Below are positions 679 to 38,152 of a DNA stretch of 64,000 nt, in pieces. Each line of letters starts with the position of its first letter. Positions within the stretch are counted from its first letter, which is position 1. The stretch comes from Ascidiella aspersa (lineage: Eukaryota): positions 18,104,001-18,168,000 of the forward strand of contig OZ004608.1 of assembly GCA_963924565.1 (NCBI GenBank). The letters run 5' to 3'. A program made the position numbers and the translations under genes. A model generated the notes under the pieces. It had not been told where the DNA came from. It saw only the letters and a list, made by a program, of their open reading frames with translations, and searched no databases.

Positions 679-3600
679 TCAAAATCCGGTGAATTCCTCA
701 TCCGATTCGGAGCTGCTGTCCGCATAATGCACGGTTGACCGCTTTCGCATCTCCGGGGGAGCACCAGGCACCATGTTGGAGTGTTTGCTGCGCTGCTTAG
801 AGCTGCTATGCTTTTTGCTTTTGAGTGCGGTAGACTGGCGTATTGCCTTTACAAGTTTTTGACAAGAAACATGTTAAGCTAAACTAAAATCATGCTCGAT
901 CGAAAACATGGAATGCCTTTTATAATATTTAAAAAAAATTTTAAACAACAAATTCAGCTGTATGATGCGTAACAAACAACCGTTTTCGTTCTTGTTATAT
1001 GAAGTATTTGAGGCAGAACATCCCATTTCTAAGTGTCCGTGTATTCTTATAAAAACTCCAGAAAAAGGGGATTTGACTAAGTACTAACTCCAACCCCGGC
1101 CTTTTGTGCAGTGGTTTCCAACCCTAGCCTAATATCCTTGTGTAATATAAATAACAACGGTGGCCATTTTCGCAGCGTAGGTTTAGGAAAACTGGAAAGC
1201 AGGTCGTGACAACAAAAAATGTTTAGGAATAACTGGACTACTACACGAGGTAAGCGAAGCGAGCGAGAATTTGGTAAAGAAATTAAGTTAATTTTATAGT
1301 AATACACATATATTTAGATACCCCCAATATGAATATAAAAAACACCAAAAATAGTGCGGTATCCTTTACCACAAAAGTTCGGAGAACAGCTTGATTTAGT
1401 TAGGTTTAACAAGACAAAAGAGTACGAATAAACTACTTCGTTGAACTACATTTAGCATTGATTTAGTTAGGTTTAAAAAGACAAAAGAGTACGAATGAAC
1501 TAATTCGATGAACTTCATTTAGCAGTATAAATTGGTCATCGATTGTGAAAATCGCCTAGTAGTACGAGACCAACATACCGCGAGTGCCGGTCGAGGTTTG
1601 TTAACGTCGTCATCAGAATCACGGTCGCTATCCTCGTCATCCTGATCATGTTCTTTCAATGGAGCTTCAACTGTTGGAAAACAAATAAATAAAGCATTAA
1701 CCAAGTGAAATAAAAGCGATGGTAAGAAAAAAAAAAAAAGACATCAAAACGCGCCTTGACTAGAAACGAAACTCAATTACCAGTTAATACGGTTGATGAA
1801 CTTTGTTTTGACGGAGTTTTCTTGTTGTTTTCAGAATCCGAGTCGTCTTCATTAGGATCCAGTTTGTTCATCCATTCATTAAACTAGAAATATATGAAAT
1901 ATTTCTTGCACTCGACTATAAACCATACAAGCCGATTAAAAAATGGCGCTAAATCAGAATTACTGTCGAAAAGCACCTGTTCGTGTCTAAAACACAATGA
2001 AAAAAGTTGCCAGCCTTCATTGACACAAATACAATCAGAGTGTTTTAAACAAGTTTGCCCAGCCATTGTATTCTTTTGTTCAAGTTATAAACACAGGGGT
2101 GGCTTTCGCCGACAATTTTTTTATCAAATAACCTCAAAACATTGTATGGATGTCTAATTGTCTATTGTCTATCTTACCTCGTAGTATTGCTCGACGACTG
2201 ATCGTTTGTAGTCGGGGTGCTTACACGACATCCCCTGTCTGGTCCTTTCTAGGTGTTGCAAAGCACGGGTGGGTTCAAACTTGAGATCTGCCCGGCGGCG
2301 GTGGCACGGCCGGTCATTTGCTCTGTTTACCTCACTCGGCGAGTACTTGTGGATTTTGCTACAAAAATAAACGCAATTTAAGTTTTTCAGGAGATTCACA
2401 ACACTCAACGATTTGTAGCAGTTTGATTACAAATGGCAAGGGTAACTAGCTCGAGTTTACAATGTTATTTCAAACAAGAAGATTTTCATAATATATGTTG
2501 CTAGCTCGTTTAATGTTTGCAACGATGCTTGAACATAATCCAAATAGAAGGATGTTAACCTAAACAGAAAAGCGGCAATAATGCATTATACCTGCATATA
2601 ACTTTATCTAAAATTAAATATTTTTTAAACTCACTTGTCTGTAAATCCAAACATGGACTTGAGATGATGCTTGACCCAGAGTAGGAGTAGGCAAGCAAGT
2701 GAGAGGTGCGCAAATTCCTTAACTGGCTCGTCCGCATCAGGCAACCTCGTAATCATTCTCTCGATGCCCTCATCTCCATCTACGTCATCGTTTTCATCAT
2801 CTTCGTCTTCTTCATCTTCCTCAGACGAAGAAGAACTTGAAGAGTCGCTCTCGCTACTGGAAGAGGATGAAGAAGAAGATGCGTCCTCATCGGAGGATCG
2901 CTTTCTCGCACGCTTCTTTTCGATCTTTTCCATTTTCTTTCGTTCTTTGGCGTCCAACTTCTCTTTGCGCTTGAGAAGTCGCACTTCCTTCTTCGTCATT
3001 TTTGGTTTAAGTGACTAGAAACGCACACAGATAAACTACTAATGGGCCTATAGATGTAGCTTGTCTAGACGAGAGGTGACCAACCTATGGCGCATGTGCC
3101 TACAGTGGCGCATTGCACGATTACAAGTAGCGCACTGTTTAGCAAAGAAGTACCCCGGGGTTCGCGCAACTAGCCAGAGCACTTCTTACTGCGTATTAAT
3201 AATTTATTAATTAATCTCTTTAACAGCAAATAGTTTGTAATTGCTGATTTGAAAGTTAAGAACAGTCTTCGTACAGTGTTAATTAAAACTTTTCTCGTTT
3301 CAAATACGCTATTTTTATATCAAGGAATGAAAATGGGCTGCGAGGTAAGAGGTTTGAAAACCTTGGCTGTAAAGTTTCTAAACCCATGCTATAACATTGG
3401 AAACAAATAAGCCCATTTACAATTAGGGTTAACATAAATATATTAAACCACAAATCTTAGAATTCAAAGGAAGTCAGTTTGTCGTGCACTTACCTCTTTG
3501 AAGCATTGCAGGACGTTAGTCCCGGAAACCGACACGTAAACTTCAATTTGACTCATGAGGAAGAGAGGTTCGTCCAATGTTGCGTACGGAAAGTGAGCAA

Positions 3601-6600
3601 GGTTGTCAGCAATGAACAGCAACATGCTAAGCTCAGTTTTCTGGCCAGAAATAAATTTTACGCGATTTTATAATCTTGTCAAGCCACAGTCGGATTCCAG
3701 TTAGAATTTAAATTACAATATCGATAGTTCAGTATTAATCACGTTAGGTAAAATTTTGGAAATATTAACGTAAACGAACGGTAAAGAAGTGAAAATAAAG
3801 CAATTTCTTACCACTGTATCGTCAAACAGTTTCAACAGCGACAGAATTAAAGCCCTTCGATGCTTGCGGTCGGAGCGAACCATTTGGTACAAGTGGGAGC
3901 AGCTGGCCTGGAAACAAAAAAAACTGAATGTGGTGAAAGCTGCAATGCTTACAATAAATACATTTTATAAACTATAGAAGTTTGCATACGTATTGTATCG
4001 TGACCTTTGACAATATTACAACTAGTCTAAAATATAATATCAATTCAAAATGAAACGATAAAAAACTATTCGCCTTACTGACACATGATAAACTATTATA
4101 AACTTGGTGTTTACCTTATGAAGACCAACGCTTTCGTCTAGTCCCGGAACTGTGGTTTCCATGTAGCCCCGTGTTAGCTTGTTAGTTGGTCTTACATAGC
4201 GCTGAAGGCGATGGGCTAACTTCATACCTTGTAAAGCTTGAGTGTGGATGAAGCCGGAGTAACGTTTGCTAAGTTCGCTCAACTGCAAAACGAAAATAAA
4301 TAGTTTTTATCACCAGTTCTTAGCCCATTTTTTCTATCACCAGCCCCTTTTGTAACTGCTGTATGCTTGGGCCCTTCGGGTACTAAATAAGTTTGATACC
4401 AAAACAAATTTTGTTTTTGTTAATTACACTCCAATCAGACAATTGAACATTTTTGCTTTTTTGCTTTTTAGGAATTTGATTTTTTGAGCGAGAATTAATT
4501 TCTTGGAGCGTTAAACAAGGGCGGATCTAGGATAACTGTTTGGGGGGACTATAAAAAATTCAAGATGATATCATGCGGTAATTGGCAACCTAAGGCGAGT
4601 CTTTATCGCGCGAACGCGAAAAAGTGTGCTTTATTTTAATTAAATTGTCAAAACCTAATTTGTAGGCATAACGCAAAATACATGCCATTTAGTGCAAGGA
4701 GATTTTGAGGTAAAGATAAGTCCACAAAAAGAATAAAACAGAAGTAGAAAATGACAAAAGAGTGACGTTTATTATTCAATAGAGTGTCGTTTATTATTCA
4801 ATAGAGTGTCGTTTATTTATTGTATTCGCAACTTGAGTCTCGCCGTTTCCCGTTGTGTTGCATGTAGTAAGGTCATTCGATTAGGCTATGCTAGAAAAAC
4901 AACCAAAATTTGCGGTGAGAAACTTACGACCTCGGCCATACCTGAACCATCGCTCTAACAACTAAACCACTATAACACGCAACACTAACAACGAAGATAC
5001 CGAGACAGACAAAAGCATCTAACTGATTCGAACAAAACCTTATTATATTGTTTACCAAAACGGAACACTTGAAACCCACGAGGAAAATATTTACTACGGG
5101 TAGATTAACAACGTACCTGCTGGTCAGCCTCCTTATGTACAGCGGGAGTTGGATCGGATGCTGCCGCGATAAGATATGGAACGCACTGGACAGGGTGGAC
5201 CAGACCCTGTTGCAAGGTGAGGAACACTGTGTGCAAAGCAGCGTGACGAACCATGGCATGACGGTGAAAGAACGACTCCAGTACCTAAGATTGTATAAAG
5301 GGTGCTGTTGTTAATTTATTGGTTATAAGCACAGGAAATTACACAAAAATTTGCAAATATCTGTGACAGGGTGGAATTACGAGCAAAATGTGCTTACAAT
5401 TTTAGTTAGTGCTACATAGTACTACGGTTTTTATTTTTATTGTGGGCCCGGCGCAACTATTTGAATATACCAAAAAATAACCCTAGAATAAGTAAAAGGT
5501 TTAGGCCAGTGGTTTGCATCCTTAGTACCCTTCTCGTGTGTTTCTCGTGTAATTTATGCCGCTTTCTTCTTACATTTTAGAAGAAAATGTTTCGTCAAAT
5601 TTGAGTTTCACTGGAGAATATTCACATGTTATATGCTTGCGCCCCCCTTCGAAGACTCCCGAATGGGAAAGGAAACCGGTTGAGAAACCTTGGTTTAAAC
5701 GGACAAACTTTTATTCTTAACTCGGTAGTTGAAATAATGCCTTGGCTCACCTTCCTTAAATTAAGCCATTTTTTATATAACCTTTTTAAAATGTTTTACT
5801 TGTTTGAGAAAAAGCTGCATGACCGATGACGCCATTCCACTGGATACGTCACAAATCTCCTTGATGTCATCCTCGGTGGTGGTTGTGTCGTCAGCCGACA
5901 TCGAGCGGTTTGCTTCATGATCCTCTCCCTCCTATAAATATTAATCTCAAGTCAACACTGATATGAAGCAAATATGCCAAAAGAGAAATAGCAAAGGTAT
6001 AATCAATGCTAATTTAGATGTTGAACTTAATAAAAGTGGAATCAAATTTTATTGAATCTAAAGCAGAAAACTGACTTACTATAGAAAATCTTAGTTTACC
6101 TGTTTTGCTTTCCTGGCGCTCGCTTCGGCAGCCTCTTGCATTTTTACATCTTCGGTTTGAAGATAGTTCTGAAGGTTTTGCAAAATCTGAAACAAAGTCA
6201 GTATATTAGTCTAACTACCAAGAATCGACGCAAAAATCTTGTGGTATTTTGGGCCATACCAACTTGTGGTATTTGGGCCATACCTAACTTGTGGTATTTG
6301 GGCCATACCTAACTTGTGGTATTTGGGCCATACCTAACTTGTGGTATTGTGGACCTTCCCTAACTTGTGGTATTGTGGACCTTCCCTAACTTGTGGTATT
6401 TTGAGCCATACCTAACTTGTTGATGTTGGGTCATACCTGCTTTTTGAGGCGATTCGACGCTTGGCCCGGGTCGAGGAGCGAGTTGTAAAGATCGCGGGTG
6501 CTTTGTCTGAACATCATGTTTGGGTCTTGTACCATAAGCAGGCCCAAGGCAGCTACTGAAAAGCCCCTTAGTTCCTCTGTGTGCGGGGTTGTGCGAAGGT

Positions 6601-18600: not shown

Positions 18601-21600
18601 TTACTTAGTGTTTGGCCTCTTGAACTACTGACTAACACACGCGATTTTGAGGGCTGCAATAAGGTTTTAAGTAACAAATGTTCGGGCGTTAAGCAGTAAA
18701 CATGGTAACATTGGTAAGCTGTACTTACTCCACAGAGGTGGCCAGTCGCCTTGAGTTTGGCCAATTCTCCACTCAGCTCTTGAAGCTTGGGCCTAGAAAG
18801 AATCAAGCACTGTGGAACAAGGGCTTTTTGGGAATTTCCCTCATCCATAGCCTCTGCTAATATCCTGGGGTCGATGGAATCCATGTTGTCAAAGATGGTG
18901 GAAATCATTTTGTTCATGTGGTGAAATAACCCAGCACCATCTAAGATGTTAATTTTTTTATCACGGTAGACAAATCAAGGCAATAGTTTTTCTACCTAGA
19001 AATACTTTTGGTTAAAAAGCATGTCAAAAAAGTAGTAATTTTGCTCTGGTGTCTTAAATAAAATGTCTCAATTCATTATCTCAAATTTTAAGTTGGAACC
19101 GGCAAGAGAGTTGACAGTCAAGCCCCATGTTTAATTAAAATAATGTAAAAACTTGTCATGTGAATCAGAGTTGAAGAAGCTATGGATTTGAGCAGTTTTT
19201 TAGTTTCATCAGTAAATACGGATATTTGTCTTACCTTCACTTTTAATCCGAGACTCCACAGCTTTCCTTCTTTCTCTTTTACGCATTTCTTCCTGGTGTG
19301 AACGTTTAGAGTCCGGAGAGCGAAAGCTTTCATCAGCAGAGTCATCACTTTGCATAGTGATAAGTCTGGCAGAAGATTCATGCTTCCGCTTTTGTCCTGC
19401 ACCATTGAGTAAAGAAATAATTTTTAGCAGAAAATATCACACAGGGTCAGTCTATAAGTAATTTTAAAAACAACTTCTTAGTTAAATATTTTTTTAATAA
19501 TTGAAGGTTAATATGTTATAATTAGGGCTATTAGTTTTTGACTTGTCAAAAAAAGGCAAAATTTTGTCAAAATTTACATGTTAGGTCAAAATTTGTCAAA
19601 AATTTTTCAAGTCAAAATCGAATAAAAATGCACGTAAATCGTTTACAAAAAAAAAAAAACTATAGTTAGCTTTTTGAAATTCGTCGTTCAGTTGTTTTGA
19701 AATTTATCGTTTAATTTTATCAAAACAAATTAGTTTTGATTTTTGTTCAAAGTCATTTTAACCGTATTATATATTTATTAGAGCAATATACGGTATAAAA
19801 ACGCGTGATTAACAACGCTTAGGTTATTTAAATCGATGTATTTCTAACAGGTCAAATTTTTGTCAAAATAAATTATTTTTAGGTAAAAATTTTAATTTTT
19901 CAGGTCAAAAAATAATCGCCCTAGTTATAATATTTGTTTTTTATCAATGCGATATATATTGCCTTTGCAACTAACTTCTAATAAACCAAATTTTATTCTA
20001 ACCAACTTTTAATAAAATAACTTAATCTAACAAAAACAAATCAAATAGGCGCAAACATCATTATTTTACCTTTAGTTTCATTCCGCTTTCGTTTCTTGTC
20101 TTTAATTCTGTCAGCCATCGAAGTGTAAGCACCAAAATCATTGTCATCCAGCAAATGCTTGGGAATAGCAGTGTCCGATGCAAATTTATTGACATCAATT
20201 TTATCGATAACCACAGATGGCTGATTGTAACTATCTCTTCTTTCCCTGCGGCCAGAGCCCACTTGAGCCTGGAATGGTTTGGGAGGTGGCTTTCTTTCTC
20301 TAAATCGCCGTCCTAGCATAAAGAAATACATATTTTTACTTTTTACAATTTTTTTTAGAAATTACAATCAAACATCAAACTTTAATAAAAAACTTTTGAG
20401 AGCCAGGCATTTTACAGTAAATAGATTTTATTAAATTGTTATTTCCTGTTTTAGAAATTCTGGACTATAATACTAAATTTTACAACAGTGATAACAATAA
20501 ACACTAGAGATAGACCGATATATCGCGAGCTTACCACTAATATCAGCCAATATTTGGCTTTTACCGATGTATCGGTATCAGTGAATGTAGGCCGATACTT
20601 TGGCCGATATTTTAGTACGAAAATATGATATAAATTTTCCTGTACAACAAACAACTTACCCATTTTTTAACAAAAAAAAATTGGGTTTTAGCATCACACC
20701 AAGTTAATATGCAAAATATTAGTTTAACAATTAATGAAAGTATATAATCTAAAACGTTATTTGGATTTTATTTTCAATTAATTCAATTTTTTAACATTTC
20801 TTAGGAATATAAAAAAAATCGGTATCGGTATCGGGTACCGGTTGACAAAATTGTAATAAATCGGTTATTGGTATCGGTCCAAAAAAGTGATATCGATCGA
20901 TCTCTAATGAACACTAATAAAAAATTAAGATTGTGTTGTGACAATCTACTTAAAAAAGGAAACAAGATTATCTAGCTTGGTAAATAAAAACTAAACAAAA
21001 AAAGGTTAAAATCAACATTAAAATCAGTTAGATCCATATTTAGTTGTTTTGTGAATCGACATTAAAACAACTAAATGAACCAGGTGATATCTACGTGAGT
21101 ATTATTATTGTTCAAAACATACAAATTAAATTTATTTGAGCTGTGTGCCAATAAAAAATACAAAGAATGGTCTCATCAAAAAATACCACAAAAGCTGGCT
21201 TAGGACAGCCGTTCTCAACCAGTGGGCCATGGCTCACTGGTGGGCCATAAGAACATTTGAGGTAGGCCACAGACCATTTTGAAAAAACTCAGATTTAGTT
21301 TCATTTTTTCGTTTGTGTCACTATATTTAATTTTACAGGAATAATGGCTTGGGGAGGAATTAAAAAGGAATGTAAATTTATTGTTCAGCCGCAAGAACCC
21401 CACTAATGCACGGTTGAATAAATAATCTGTTTTGAAATTGGTTTCTGCTGTGTTTTGTTCTAAACCTATTTTACAGTTTTTTCTTTCATAAAACTATTGG
21501 GCCACAGAATTTTTTTTCAACGTAAATGGGCCACGAAAGAAAAAAGGTTGAGAACCACTGGCTTAGGATGTCCATGACGATAAGATTTTTCATTTAAGCT

Positions 21601-24600
21601 TGTTAAATTGTTTACTGTCTACCTGTTGTTTTTTATTTTATTTTAATGGATATTAGCTTTTTACATCTGGCAACATAGAATTCCCATAATTTAGTGATTA
21701 GGAATGATATAAAAAAGCAGTGGGACTGCTAGGTCTGTCGCAAGCCTTACCAGTAGCACACTGAAAGAAAGTGACAAACCGCAAAAAAAACATAAAATCC
21801 TATATTTCTGAGTCTATATAAAGCTTTCAAAAGTTTTCATATTTAAATGCATTATCTAAAATGACATGTCATATAATTTTCCAACATATGCCTCAAAGCA
21901 TTGCCACAATGATATTAGATACTACTACTGTTTCAGATTTGTAAGTGACTGCTTGTTAAGGAATGTAATGAGAGGTTTTAATACAGTAAAAAATTGTGAA
22001 CATGAATGTTGTGTCCACTTGGGAAAAACAATCTTCATTTCATATTGCAGGTGGCGAAAGCGCTTGTAATTTAGCGAGCCCCGGACAAGGAACTTAGGAA
22101 ACTGCGCTGCTGAAAGTAGAAACATAATTCTACCAAAATTAATCACACATATTTCCCGGCCTTGTTTTACTTTTTCGCCTAAAGTTAACTGCACACAAAG
22201 CAGTTTCACAGCTTTGTGATTGCACACAAAGCAGTTTCACAGCTGGCCCCTAGCAAGAGTGTTTTAAAATGGTCGCTTTGCATCTTAAGTTTTGCTTTTG
22301 CTGGACATTAATTGGCTGTTTCTGAATAGTGTTTTTTCTATTTAAGACATCATACCATCACTTTTTTATGATGTCAATATTCGGTCATACGGAAAATAGG
22401 GAAATTCCCTAGTTGAAATTTGGGATCCCCCTTTTAGATTTCTGGATAGGCCTCTGGGCTTATAGGGCAGACATGGGCTACTTATTGTTACAGTTATACA
22501 CAGTTAGGTGCACTCTACAAAAATAAGTCACACTAACACTGGGAGAAAACCTAACATTTTGACAAGATGATTGTTTTGACAAACAGACAAAGCACAAAGG
22601 ACAGACAAACTGCTCAAAAACATATAAGGTATAGTACACCACAGCAACCACTACAAGCATGCAGTAAATCGTTTTAGAACAGCAGAAGTTATCAGATGTT
22701 CCACGAAAACAATATTATGGAAAAGCAACACAGCAAGCGTGTACGAACCAGTATTGTCAAGGGGATCTATAACAATTGCAGCATAACGCTTTCCATTCAT
22801 TGGCCATTTCGCCACAATCTCAGTGCCAGGTTGTAGTTCACCAAAGTCGTTAACTTCAGTATCATCCGGATAAAGGACATCTTTCAACTTATAAATGTCA
22901 GCCTCTTCAGCATCAGCAATAAACTTAACCCGGATGTGTTGTACACCTGGTTAAGTTTGTGTAAGCAAAAATCACAAACTATGCATTCAACTTGTAGTTA
23001 TGATAAGATTTTTTATACAAAGAAAAGGGGAATATATACAACAAATAAATACTAAAGAGCACACATCTAGTGCAGATATGCTGTCTAAAATTGCCTGAAC
23101 CTGAACCACCATAAATTTATAAAAACACAACTCCTCTTCAGATTATCCCAACATAAACAAAATCAGACAACATTATAAATATATAGTGCCAGTTCCTGGC
23201 GCTGAAGCTAAAACTAAACTCACAGACTTCAAGTAACCTGAATAATTAAAACTCAATAAAGAATATGGCCACAACCACAATTCACCTTACTTTTCTTGCT
23301 ATATCTGGGCAGACTACAACTTGCCTGGAAGGACGGTTATTAGTGAAACCATTTTCGGCTTGTCGTGCTTGGCAACTTGCATCTGGTCTCTTGGTCTAAA
23401 AGTATTGGGGCTGGTCTGCTGTGAGCCACTTGAACCAGAAACTACTCGAACTTTTGCTGCAATGCTGATAGGTTTTGACAACAACAGCACAGGATTATTT
23501 TTAAAATTATTTTGGCACTTGATGATATGATCACTGATTGTGGCAGCTTCTTTTTTTGTTGCATTCATGACCAACTACAAAACTCCTATTGCATAACTGA
23601 AACAAACAGAGAAAAATGAATTAATAAACTATGCAGGTAAACTAAAACTATCTGTTTCTGCAAAATGGCACTACAAACTGTTACACTCAAAATAGTAACT
23701 ACACTACATCCATAGAGGTTTTGATTTAAAAAACAACAGCAAAGGATTATTTTTTAATTATTTTGGCACTTGATGATATGATCACTGATTGTGGCAGCTT
23801 CTTTTTTGTTGCATTCATGGCCAACTAAAAAAAACCTATTGCATAACTGAAACAAACATAGAAAAATAAATTATTAAACTATACAAGTAAACTAAAATGA
23901 TCTGTTTCTGTAAAAATGCATTACAAACTGTTACACTTCAATAAAACAATCAACTTTACATAATATCAACTTAAGCCCATTTTGGTAAATTGCTGTTTTT
24001 AAGGAAATTTACAAAACATTATCAATAAACATGTTCTGTTGTTCACACTCCCATCTGTTAGTGTTTTATAAACCAGGATATTTTTTTGGATAACTTCTTG
24101 CCCTTTATAACATGCCTCAAAAACTGTGTCTCTCTGGATACCTGCTAAACATATTACTGGTTACTGCAATGCTCTTAGGTAAAAACCTTAAAACTATCTT
24201 TACTTTTAAAAATTGCATATTGTCAAAATAAAGGTAACTATAATTATAACAATTTTATGAAACAGCTGAGAGTCTATAATTTAAAGAAAATACGAAAGTG
24301 TTCAAACCTTTTCTTTTAAGATTTGAGCCATGGCTGGAGCTGGATATTGAAGAATGCCTACTTTTACCACCAGAAGAGGGGTGTGTCTACAAGGAAAGTT
24401 TGGTAAGTAAGCAAAGGCTTTGCAATGATATATTAATTACGCACAATTTTAAAGTTGGGTGATACAACCTACCAATGTTTATTATGTGTTTAAAGAAAAT
24501 GTTTTTGCACAAACAGGCTGTATTTACATTTTTTTAAGTTATAGTAACCTAGAGGTTCCCAAGCTGTGTGAGGTGACACTCTGGTGCATTGTTTAAATAT

Positions 24601-27600
24601 TTTAATGGCGTCACATACCGATTTTGTTTCTTATAAATTAATATTTTCTTCAACAAACAAATAAATAAATTGGCTTTTGTGAATATATTTAGGTGAAAAA
24701 ATATTTTGCTAAGTGTGTGACAGGTTAAACTTTTTTAAAGGAGTCACAAGAGTTTGAGAACCACTTTATTAACCCATTATGCCTCACCTGTGGAGCATTG
24801 CAATAATTCACAAGTGGATAAGGGGCATTTTCTTTTATCGTCCTTTTGGGAGCACTTGACATATGTACTTGACTGAGGCTGTCAGTTTTCACAGAAGGTG
24901 GTAGATGATGACTTTGAAAAGAGCTTTGTCTTGATTCTGTAGGTATGGGAACAGAAGAGACATCTTTAGTAGAAAAAGTGGCATGTAGCTGTCTACCTCC
25001 AGCAGGGACTTGCCGCTGTTGGGCGTTTGCAACCTCTTGAAGGTCTGGTTGAAAGTTTTGTTGAAGGTTAGCACGAGGAGAAATGAAACCGGGTTGCGTA
25101 ATATGAGATGAGAGTTTATTAGTCTCCAAGCCTTGGTTTCTTCCGCCTATTGCTTCACTATAAGGTGGAGGTTTAACAGGAGTATTTTGCACTGTTTGGT
25201 TGTGAAGTTGAGGTGTATATGCCACCTGCTGATTATCCCACAAGGATTGCTGCATATAGGAGTTTACTTGGGACTGTCCTGGAAGTAGATGTGAAGGGTA
25301 ACTCTGGGGAGAGACAAAACCTCCCTGTTGAGAAGACTGGTTGTACATGTTTGGCGAACTGAACATGTTTGGTGGGGTTCCAACATTGGAATATGGAAAA
25401 TGCTGGGCAAGTTGCTGTGGAGTAAATGTTGGAGATAAAAAATGGCTGGACGGAGTTCTGTGCTGTGGGTGCTGTGATTGCAAAGTAAAATTATGATTGT
25501 CTTGAGTGGAAGGTAACCTTTGCTGCTGAACCTGCTGTAGAGCTGGTTTGGGGGTTTCCCTCGGATGAATCATTGAATGCTTCTGTGTAGGATTCTGGAA
25601 GTCAGAGGGATTCCTGTGCTCAATTGCAGAAGTATTAGTCTTTGGTTTTGGTGCAGAAACAAAGCTATGAGAATTTCCCCTATCTTGTTTAAAATCTCTA
25701 GACTGGTGATTTGTTGCTTGTATAGTTTGAGGATGACTCTGTGGGATTTTATGAGGTCTGTGTCGGTTCTTTTCTTTTTCCAGTTTGCTGCTGTTAGGCA
25801 GTGCTTGCTGCTGCTGCACTGAAGCCGCATACTGGTTGTTAAACACTTGCTTTACCATCGCCACAGCAGCATCTTCAGCTTTCTTTTGTCCAGATTCACT
25901 TCCAGGTTTCTGTTTTGTTTCAGTTCTCGGAGAGGATGCTCCTACGATGGAAGAAACTTTGAAAGCTTGATCTGATTTGGATCCTGATGATTCGCTTGAA
26001 CCAGAGGTTTTCACTCGTGTGAGAGTCAACTTAATAGGTCCAACGGGATTGTTCTCAGGTTTATCAGAAGACACTACCCCATACTCAACAGGTTCATTTC
26101 CAGCACTTCTTTCTCCCCTATCTCTTGATTTACTTTTGTTTTTCTTTGTCCGCCTTTAAAAAAAAATTGATTTAAGAAAGAAAAAAAATATATTCAATTG
26201 AGGTAATAAAAAAGTTAGTCAAACACAACCTAACATAAAAAAAACATTTTAAAATAGCTGATAAAATGTTTTAGTACATGCCTTATTTTAAGGCAGATTT
26301 TTGGATTCTCTTCCTGCATTGCAGGTGTTTGTTGAATATTAGCTGCAGGTTCCTGAGTATTTTTTTCTTGATAGTAATTCTGCTTGGTCTCTTTCGATTG
26401 AGGTTGTTGTATAGACTAAAAACAGAAACACAACACAAAATTCATACAGCATTGTTAAAAGCAACTACAAAAGTGTAAGTGTACGCAGCAACTTACCTTT
26501 TCAAACTGTCTAGGATGCCTTGGCTGCGGGGCAACTGCTTGAACTGGCTTAGCAACAGGACGGTTGGTATTTCCTAAAGTTACATGGATTGCAATACCAA
26601 CTTTGAAAAATCACTTATATACATAATATAAAGGTTGCTCAATTTTCAAAAAGTTAAAAAAATGTAAGATTTTGCTCAATTTTCAAAAAATGTAAGATTT
26701 TTCCATTGTATGGACAAAATAAACGACTTTGGTAAAAAAATATATAAAAAAGTAGTTCATTTTTTATACACCTGGCATTCAAAGTTTGCCAGACAAAAAC
26801 ACCTAAATCATGGAATCCCGCTGTGAAACTTTTTATAAATAAAGCTCAAAATAATTTGTATATAGGCCAGTCAGGCAAGTGTCTTGCAATCAGCACTCAC
26901 CCTGACAAAATGAAAAGGGCTTTTTCGTGGGTATATAAACATAGTTCTTATATGGCCTGCCTTGATTGTTACTGCACTATTAAATGCATAAGACTTTATA
27001 TACCACTTGTGATAAATTGAGTCCAGTAGATTTAATAAAAACAACTAATTTTAGTTTGGGGCACTTTCCAGTTGGGTGAGTTGGTGTCAATCAGCAGTTG
27101 CATGGAGCAAATTGCACTAAATTGCCAACCATCCAGGTATTGTGTTTTTTTATTACAGAAGTCAATTTTTTTATCCATGTAATAAAAATGGCCTTGAAAA
27201 CCATACATTTTCAACCCTTGAGTGTATATATTATTGTTCATATATCTAACTAACCATGAAGTAGTGGATTAACTCTTGCACTTGCAGTTTGGTCATTCTG
27301 AAGAGGAAAAGATTGCAAAGGCCTAGCAACAAAACATTGTGAATTAAAAGGAGTATTACCGGGCAAACTGTTTTACAAGAAAAATAAATGTTTGATTACC
27401 CAGACACAGGGTGTTGGGAATGTTGTGTAAATCCTAAATGTCCAATGCTCTGATTAATACCTTGCTGAACCTGTCAAAAACAATTAAGATTCTTATCAGA
27501 AATTAGTATAGTTAAAGAACAATAAAAATATAAAAGGGTTTACCAAACAAACATTGACAATAAATAAACAGTTTTTATGAAAAAAAAGTTACCATATTTC

Positions 27601-32992: not shown

Positions 32993-38152
<5,160 letters not shown>

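Follow-up and report, generated by a model that had tools for sequence, protein, structure and literature searches.

A Tudor-like exon in the cohesin-loader gene NIPBL of tunicates: a putative methyl-mark reader of hybrid Tudor form

A symmetric exon in the NIPBL gene of Ascidiella aspersa

We analyzed a 64,000-nucleotide (nt) stretch of the Ascidiella aspersa genome (assembly GCA_963924565.1, contig OZ004608.1; C2:18104001-18168000 of the 308.6-Mb, 75-contig genome; hereafter the window, to which all coordinates given without a contig refer), with emphasis on a 198-nt coding exon of its minus strand (22749-22946) that lies in the gene for the cohesin loader NIPBL/Scc2 (Nipped-B) and encodes a predicted Tudor-like module. 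The host gene is, as judged from its sequence, NIPBL, because an exon of the same gene and strand (3467..3667, minus) matches the Pfam family Nipped-B_C (PF12830) with an E-value of 3.8e-9 and 37.3 bits, above the curated cut-off of 26.4. Minus-strand exons with NIPBL-like HEAT-repeat sequence extend over approximately 1 to 17.5 kb of the window. The part of the protein into which the 198-nt exon falls is disordered and separates a large low-complexity exon from the loader's HEAT-repeat body.

The exon is in phase 1-1 (2 + 65x3 + 1 bases), and its minus-strand borders read ...aacttaaccAG/GTGTACAACAC...GACAATACTG/GTtcgtac, where the slash marks the splice site. Its product, VQHIRVKFIADAEEADIYKLKDVLYPDDTEVNDFGELQPGTEIVAKWPMNGKRYAAIVIDPLDNT, represents the whole module of approximately 65 residues. 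The AG acceptor (22947..22948, minus) is preceded by a rather weak pyrimidine tract, and the GT donor (22747..22748, minus) reads ACTG/GTTCGT. Upstream in the gene, an exon recognized from its open frame and RNA coverage (23325..23574, minus, 5' limit approximate) has its 3' end at 23325, in phase 1, and uses a GC donor whose surroundings match the consensus (CAG/GCAAGT); an alternative GT lies 5 nt past this donor and would break the frame if used. Downstream, the next NIPBL exon (GRRFRERKPPPKPFQ…SMADRIKDKKRKRNETKG; 20065..20312, minus) starts at 20312 in phase 1 (…tag/GACGGCGATTT…). Since both neighbors are in phase 1 at the junctions, the frame is kept both when the exon is included (…LPG VQH… …DNT G RRF…) and when it is skipped by joining 23325 to 20312 (…LP G RRF…), so that its phases are the symmetric ones of a cassette exon. 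A preliminary description of this DNA had postulated a phase 1-1 NIPBL exon with compatible neighbors, and the sequence, the phases, and the Nipped-B_C match bear this out. The same description had named a high-copy repeat fragment as an outcome that would overturn its reading; this was rejected, the exon being single-copy in the genome, as are the 2 neighboring NIPBL exons.

The exon is conserved and transcribed

Genomic open reading frame (ORF) fragments from other assemblies, retrieved by a word search, showed 72-78% BLASTP identity to the 65-amino-acid (aa) query (71-79% among orthologues in trimmed alignments). In each of 6 such fragments, the similarity stops exactly at the donor G, past which the sequences diverge (…DPLDNTG/TQSH…, …DTAG/KFSY…, and …DNTG/TELI… versus …DNTG/SYTL… in the window). 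One orthologous exon, on a Joint Genome Institute (JGI) metagenome contig (L015), has AG and GT at positions identical to those in the window, with the donor reading ACTG/GTTGGT, and is followed 1.35 kb downstream by the next NIPBL exon (GRRFRERRPPPP…SMADRIKDKK), indicating that the exon order is conserved as well. The 2 exons differ at 55 nt, distributed as 9/6/40 over codon positions 1/2/3, with a proportion of nonsynonymous differences (pN) of 0.095 and a saturated proportion of synonymous differences (pS) of 0.97, and the identity of the flanking introns does not exceed that of shuffled sequence. Conservation that ends at the splice sites, together with differences concentrated at third codon positions, goes far beyond what a chance ORF would give, and the low pN, saturated pS, third-position bias, and unconserved flanks argue that the exon-encoded protein is under strong purifying selection.

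A profile search recovered the module in 2 UniProt entries from Ciona, namely H2ZDX1 of Ciona savignyi (262 aa) and H2XP27 of Ciona intestinalis (207 aa), the latter automatically named "Tudor domain-containing protein". In both (P0007 and P0008), the sequence runs …VVIDPLDNTG/RRFRERKPPPKPFQA…SMADRIK…, so that the module passes directly, without a break in frame, into the sequence of the next NIPBL exon (…DNTG/RRFRERKPPPKPF…). By this sequence comparison, Ciona at least also has the exon, whose acquisition is not private to A. aspersa. The preliminary description had asked for conservation in related species, which the orthologous exons and the pN and pS values provide.

Transcription was assessed with a single stranded RNA-seq run from this organism (X6), mapped to positions 20001-25900. 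Over the NIPBL exons, the first mate is always on the plus strand, and the RNA therefore derives from the minus strand, that of NIPBL. The depth is 3.8 in the bin covering the 198-nt exon (22759-22955) versus 0 in the adjoining bin 22956-23152, and the 0.17 recorded in bin 22562-22758 corresponds to its 10 exonic bases at approximately 3x. Neighboring exons have depths of 8-15, with 8.2 in bin 23350-23546 and 15 reads at 23328 (upstream exon), 11 at 20137 (downstream exon, depth approximately 10), and 10-11 in the large exon. The 198-nt exon is thus transcribed with sharp edges, at approximately 0.36 of the depth of its neighbors (approximately 8 reads versus approximately 22 expected).

These data bear on the possibility that the sequence is no functional part of NIPBL. 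It could be the remnant of an unrelated or transposon-borne gene in the intron, as the preliminary description had allowed, an exon of such a gene, or a neutral product of noisy splicing. A window peptide that lacks a Pfam match, a downstream intron packed with high-copy repeats, and an RNA depth below that of the neighboring exons would fit such an origin. The exon is, however, single-copy, its conservation is confined to the exon and has the codon-position signature of a maintained protein, its splice sites recur at the same positions in another species, in the Ciona proteins the reading frame continues from it into the following NIPBL exon, and the RNA reads over it lie on the NIPBL strand only. 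We therefore regard an origin of this kind as extremely unlikely, the stranded coverage and the Ciona exon joins refuting in particular an unrelated intronic gene, and conclude that 22749-22946 is a true coding exon of tunicate NIPBL that selection maintains.

Inclusion of the exon may be regulated. The symmetric 1-1 phases, the upstream GC donor, the weak acceptor, and the depth ratio of approximately 0.36, which is the sole sign of actual skipping, together suggest a cassette exon by which targeting could be switched through splicing, a proposal to which we give an even chance.

Several features of the surrounding introns were recorded alongside. A strong GT donor (AAAAG/GTAAGG) lies approximately 36 nt intronward of the GC donor at 23323-23325 (minus), behind an in-frame TAG; from the residual RNA depth in its bin, this donor could be used occasionally. 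At 23751-23813 (minus), in the preceding intron, there is a short local duplicate of the start of the upstream exon, 86% identical over 21 aa and interrupted by one TAA. Between the large exon and the 23325-23574 exon, the intron also shows a low, even, and strand-specific RNA depth of 1.2-1.9 over approximately 800 nt (23744-24531), with zero in the next bin, which could reflect intron retention or an unannotated exon. The intron downstream of the 198-nt exon contains blocks of very high-copy repeats (20400-22400), with RNA on both strands in the run and a summed contig depth of 10^4-10^5 versus approximately 50-100 for unique sequence.

The module is predicted to fold as a single hybrid Tudor lobe

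AlphaFold2, given the 66 residues alone, returned a confident model with an alignment of 6 sequences (predicted local distance difference test (pLDDT) 85.6, predicted template modeling score (pTM) 0.71) and a better one with 13 sequences (pLDDT 90.4, pTM 0.75; all 5 models at least 86). The predicted strands span residues 2-8, 14-17 (continuing to 24), 42-46, and 53-64 and form a four-strand barrel. Searched with Foldseek against the PDB, the models had 3 low root-mean-square deviation (rmsd) matches and no others: the JMJD2A double Tudor 2gfa_B, which is the top match of the first model (probability 1.00, 2.2 Å over 58 columns), ARID4B (7dm4; probability 0.98, template modeling (TM) score 0.60, 2.1 Å over 59 columns), and the interdigitated double Tudor of RBBP1/ARID4A (2mam; probability 1.00, TM 0.65, 1.7 Å over 61 columns); inteins, GreA, and others followed at 4.5-8 Å. 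Neither list has a canonical single Tudor among its top matches, as is expected when a permuted strand order meets a sequential aligner. Independently, the ESM-Atlas model of a Ciona homologue (residues 70-140) has ARID4/RBB1NT clusters (TM 0.68) and KDM4 clusters (0.65-0.66) among its nearest named neighbors. Among the ESM-Atlas neighbors of the Ciona module there is also a BEND6 (BEN-domain) cluster (TM 0.62), which suggests a similar small barrel there; genes of BEN type had been mentioned in the preliminary description.

In double Tudors of this type, hybrid Tudor domain 2 (HTD-2) consists entirely of the middle four strands, and the aromatic box of JMJD2 is situated in HTD-2 (PMC8038949). 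The HTD-2 strand order β3-β4-β1'-β2' is recovered here in the sequential Foldseek alignments of 58-61 columns and, for β1-β2, also at the sequence level. The earlier suggestion that β3-β4 precedes β1-β2 in a Tudor-like barrel is thus matched by 2 AlphaFold2 models, through their alignments to 2gfa, 7dm4, and 2mam, and by the ESM-Atlas model. A full interdigitated double Tudor was not found: one exon holds four strands, and its flanks are basic or low-complexity. With the second half (HTD-1) missing, the module falls outside the double-Tudor family; according to the models, the exon encodes a free-standing lobe of HTD-2 type, that is, a circularly permuted, single-lobe Tudor.

A lobe of this kind might instead be a half unit, its barrel or interdigitated double Tudor being completed by strand exchange with a second NIPBL or another protein, so that the exon would serve dimerization or partner capture. 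All known cases of these strand orders lie within interdigitated double Tudors (PMC8038949), and the genome contains 3 further weak, exon-like paralogues that share these borders (see below). Against this stand the prediction that the 66 residues fold alone into a closed four-strand unit at the pLDDT of 90.4, the exact correspondence between the middle four strands that make up HTD-2 (PMC8038949) and those encoded by the exon, and the stop codons in 2 of the 3 copies. We consider strand exchange very unlikely and retain the autonomous lobe.

Sequence-level signals are weaker and point in the same direction. Compared with Pfam one by one, 6 orthologues gave sub-threshold matches exclusively to families of the Tudor clan, with DUF4537 matched by 5 of them (best E 0.0033), SGF29_Tudor by 4 (E 0.016), and Tudor_2/JMJD2A by 1 (E 0.19). 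A profile of 13 sequences produced 22 weak matches (E 0.2-1.8) among PDB sequences, 21 of which are Tudor domains, including SGF29, TDRKH, Drosophila Tudor, 53BP1, SMN, and 7de9 (E 1.5). These align at profile positions of approximately 25-63, corresponding to the β1-β2 hairpin (e.g., 53BP1 …VVAKWSSNGYFY…), and the same half of the module aligns in hhalign with β1-β2 of both Tudor motifs in a KDM4-like gene of the A. aspersa genome. A polyketide cyclase returned by phmmer against the PDB for the single peptide was dismissed as a chance match.

The module shares with the 53BP1/SMN/SGF29-type canonical Tudors an alignable β1-β2 motif (G-x-x-V-x-A-K-W-x(6)-Y-x-A-x-V), but in those domains β3-β4 comes after β1-β2, whereas in NIPBL it comes first. 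HTD-2 of KDM4A/JMJD2A (2gfa, 5d6y) has the same strand order, with F, W, and Y on corresponding strands, and the LYP[DE]D-like turn after β4 (LYPDD in the NIPBL module) recurs in the KDM4-like gene of this genome as LYQQD. Unlike KDM4A, the NIPBL module is a single lobe lacking HTD-1 and the second strand pair, has no significant sequence match (the single Tudor_2 hit given above), has a longer β3-β4 hairpin and linker, and resides in a cohesin loader rather than a demethylase; its W-to-Y spacing is 7, as in 53BP1, versus 6 in KDM4A. ARID4A/RBBP1 and ARID4B (2mam, 7dm4; Pfam RBB1NT) provide the best structural superpositions and have HTD-2 strands of similar length (PMC8038949).

Putative methyl-lysine cage

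Residue conservation was scored over 13 homologues, down to 33% identity. Invariant in all 13 are F8, D11, E13, E14, L37, G40, N50, Y54, and V58, and W47 is kept in 12. The residues F, W, and Y that the preliminary description had proposed as an aromatic cage are therefore among the most conserved positions of the module: F8 (…RVKF…; codon 22921..22923, minus) on the β3-like strand, W47 (…AKW…; 22804..22806, minus) on the β1'-like strand, and Y54 (…KRY…; 22783..22785, minus) on the β2'-like strand. F8 stands at the end of the first strand, matching the F of …KVNF… in the KDM4-like Tudor of the same genome, and W47 and Y54 have their counterparts, by alignment, in the W and Y of both the second KDM4-like Tudor motif and 53BP1. 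In KDM4A, the cage is formed by F932, W967, and Y973, and D945 makes a salt bridge to H3R2 (PMC5114558).

The acidic partner is less clear-cut. D11 (…IAD…; 22912..22914, minus), which had been put forward as the equivalent of D945, is indeed invariant and forms, with E13 and E14, an acidic loop between β3 and β4; its equivalence to D945 is nonetheless doubtful. In the KDM4-like ORF of this genome, the D at F+13, the spacing from F932 to D945, is the last residue of …LYQQD, which matches the turn LYPDD of the NIPBL module (Y25 to D28), so that D27/D28 are probably better candidates than D11. Taken together, the aromatic trio F8, W47, and Y54 and the acidic residues D11, E13, E14, and D27/D28 occur where KDM4A- and 53BP1-type Tudors build their methyl-lysine cage, and we regard the cage of the NIPBL module as putative.

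Distribution, paralogous copies, and origin

The profile search covered 1.84 billion representative proteins at E<=0.001, within which the real matches amounted to 9 fragments, 2 from Ciona and 7 unnamed from ENA, JGI, and Logan; in this set, the module was found in no NIPBL of any other lineage and in no other annotated protein family. The search also brought up 3 bacterial repeat proteins (P0012-P0014), whose multi-stretch, low-complexity matches are spurious.

A profile search of the A. aspersa genome itself disclosed 3 weak paralogous copies: one intact 174-nt unit in which C replaces W47 (C4:5992791-5992970, plus), a 174-nt unit with one TAA at the Y54 position (C2:37260144-37260317, minus), and a copy with one TAA (C3:19822222-19822371, minus). 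The C4 and C2 copies have AG/GT borders at the same points as the NIPBL exon and the same 1-1 phase, the surroundings of the copies are repeat-rich and contain no recognizable host gene, and a word search found no database homologue of the C4 copy. These copies may be what is left of a donor gene or exon duplicates that have decayed, and they fit, without proving, the shuffling of a symmetric exon.

Candidate sources and a further match elsewhere in the genome were set aside. A partial duplication of NIPBL does not account for the 3 copies, the flanking NIPBL exons being single-copy. The KDM4-like double Tudor of this genome (C2:17315467-17315929, L003; Pfam Tudor_2, 40.7 bits) is located on the same contig as NIPBL, 0.79 Mb apart; shuffling from this gene (C2:17.315 Mb) is unsupported, as an intron splits its 2 Tudor motifs, whereas the NIPBL module is contained in one exon, and the profile-profile match is restricted to β1-β2. 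A weak match at C6:16874209-16877334 (L002) belongs to a TDRD-type multi-Tudor protein, and likewise matches β1-β2 only; the open frame in which it lies runs uninterrupted over 2927 aa and encodes many extended Tudor domains.

Proposed function

We favor, with moderate confidence, the interpretation that the exon is a maintained part of NIPBL encoding an HTD-2-like barrel that serves as a methyl-mark reader and biases cohesin loading. Under this interpretation, the exon would insert a self-contained β-barrel of approximately 60 residues into a disordered region of the loader; the ligand of the barrel would be methylated lysine (or arginine) in a histone tail or in some other protein of chromatin; this binding would bias the sites at which NIPBL-MAU2 loads or stimulates cohesin; and inclusion or skipping of the exon would switch the targeting by splicing. 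For the functional step taken by itself, namely recognition of methylated lysine or arginine on chromatin by the module, with a bias in cohesin loading, we see the balance as close to level, if anything slightly short of it. The most far-reaching version, in which the tunicate cohesin loader reads a histone methyl mark directly through a splicing-switchable, free-standing HTD-2 delivered as a mobile 1-1 exon module, with isoform choice steering cohesin loading and loop extrusion, is tentative and rather unlikely as a whole.

Several observations weigh against a methyl-mark reader in NIPBL. The window's own peptide has no Pfam match at E<=10, nor does the 99-aa ORF have one, and no Pfam Tudor model reaches its curated cut-off, even with the 6 orthologues included. 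The Foldseek E-values (0.1-0.5) are not significant, because the domain is small (66 residues). In the most distant homologue (P0016), H replaces W47. Among the 1.84 billion representatives, there is no full-length NIPBL bearing the module, which may mean that annotated gene models skip the exon or may merely reflect database content. Splicing of the exon into A. aspersa NIPBL is deduced from the shape of the coverage and from the Ciona proteins. Finally, the best matches by TM score and rmsd are 2mam and 7dm4, and the Tudors of ARID4A and ARID4B bind DNA and have no aromatic box (PMC8038949).

The last point leads to the main competing explanation, which leaves the exon and its hybrid-Tudor fold as they are but has the module bind nucleic acid or an unmodified protein, as an additional DNA or chromatin anchor for NIPBL. 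Besides the ARID4 superpositions, a very basic stretch (RRFRERKPPPKPF) follows directly after the module and recalls the RGR tail that enhances DNA binding by ARID4B (PMC8038949), and this basic tail could contribute. In ARID4A and ARID4B, however, DNA is bound mainly via HTD-1 (PMC8038949), the lobe that is absent from the NIPBL module; the module itself is strongly acidic (D11, E13, E14, D16, D22, D27, D28, and E30), which is unfavorable for DNA; and the F/W/Y trio that ARID4 lacks is conserved in NIPBL. On this evidence, we judge an ARID4-like anchor unlikely and keep to the methyl-mark reader as the working interpretation.

Other features of the window

All RNA reads have A at 23328, 24901, and 25753, where the assembly and 2 DNA runs have G (plus strand). 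In the sense of the mRNA, these are C>U differences, the one at 23328 changing Pro to Ser beside the donor; all 3 of the differences listed are of the same type (344 more exist), and polymorphism between individuals is the most likely cause. The neighboring gene encodes a polo-like kinase (approximately 33000-36900, minus), with kinase-domain exons, including …GGFARVYEV…, and polo-box exons, and with a serine-rich first exon of 221 aa (37490-38152).

Discussion

The routing of the cohesin loader to particular chromatin is not yet settled; vertebrates tie the loader to chromatin indirectly, through partners such as HP1, Mediator, and BRD4. To our knowledge, direct reader domains in cohesin regulators have been reported only from plants, e.g., the PDS5 Tudor that binds H3K4me1. 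Plant SCC2 carries a PHD finger, and vertebrate NIPBL carries an HP1-binding motif; as proposed for the tunicate module, each provides a link of the loader's own to chromatin defined by histone marks and is placed in the N-terminal or middle region, but they represent another fold or motif in other lineages. The plant PDS5C Tudor, known in complex with H3K4me1 (7de9), is a Tudor reader gained by a cohesin regulator in one lineage (bioRxiv 10.1101/2025.05.08.652912). It differs in being canonical and non-permuted and in belonging to PDS5 of plants rather than to the loader, and it was acquired independently.

The best-ranked literature mentioning both NIPBL and Tudor does not describe a Tudor domain in NIPBL, and the literature searched contained nothing relevant on the NIPBL of Ciona or other tunicates. 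The sole prior trace is the automatic UniProt name of the orphan Ciona fragment H2XP27, which was not recognized as NIPBL. The novelty lies in the permuted, single-lobe form predicted for this Tudor-superfamily module and in its host protein.

The tunicate loader may thus recognize chromatin marks directly. If the interpretation is true, one symmetric exon is enough to encode an HTD-2 lobe that stands alone as an autonomous, circularly permuted Tudor, a domain form so far undescribed on its own, which would bear on the evolution of hybrid Tudors and offer a minimal reader scaffold of 60 residues. Tunicates are the sister group of vertebrates, and a reader-type domain in the NIPBL of these closest invertebrate relatives would constitute a natural experiment; the presence of the module in Ciona places it in a tractable model organism for the positioning of cohesin.

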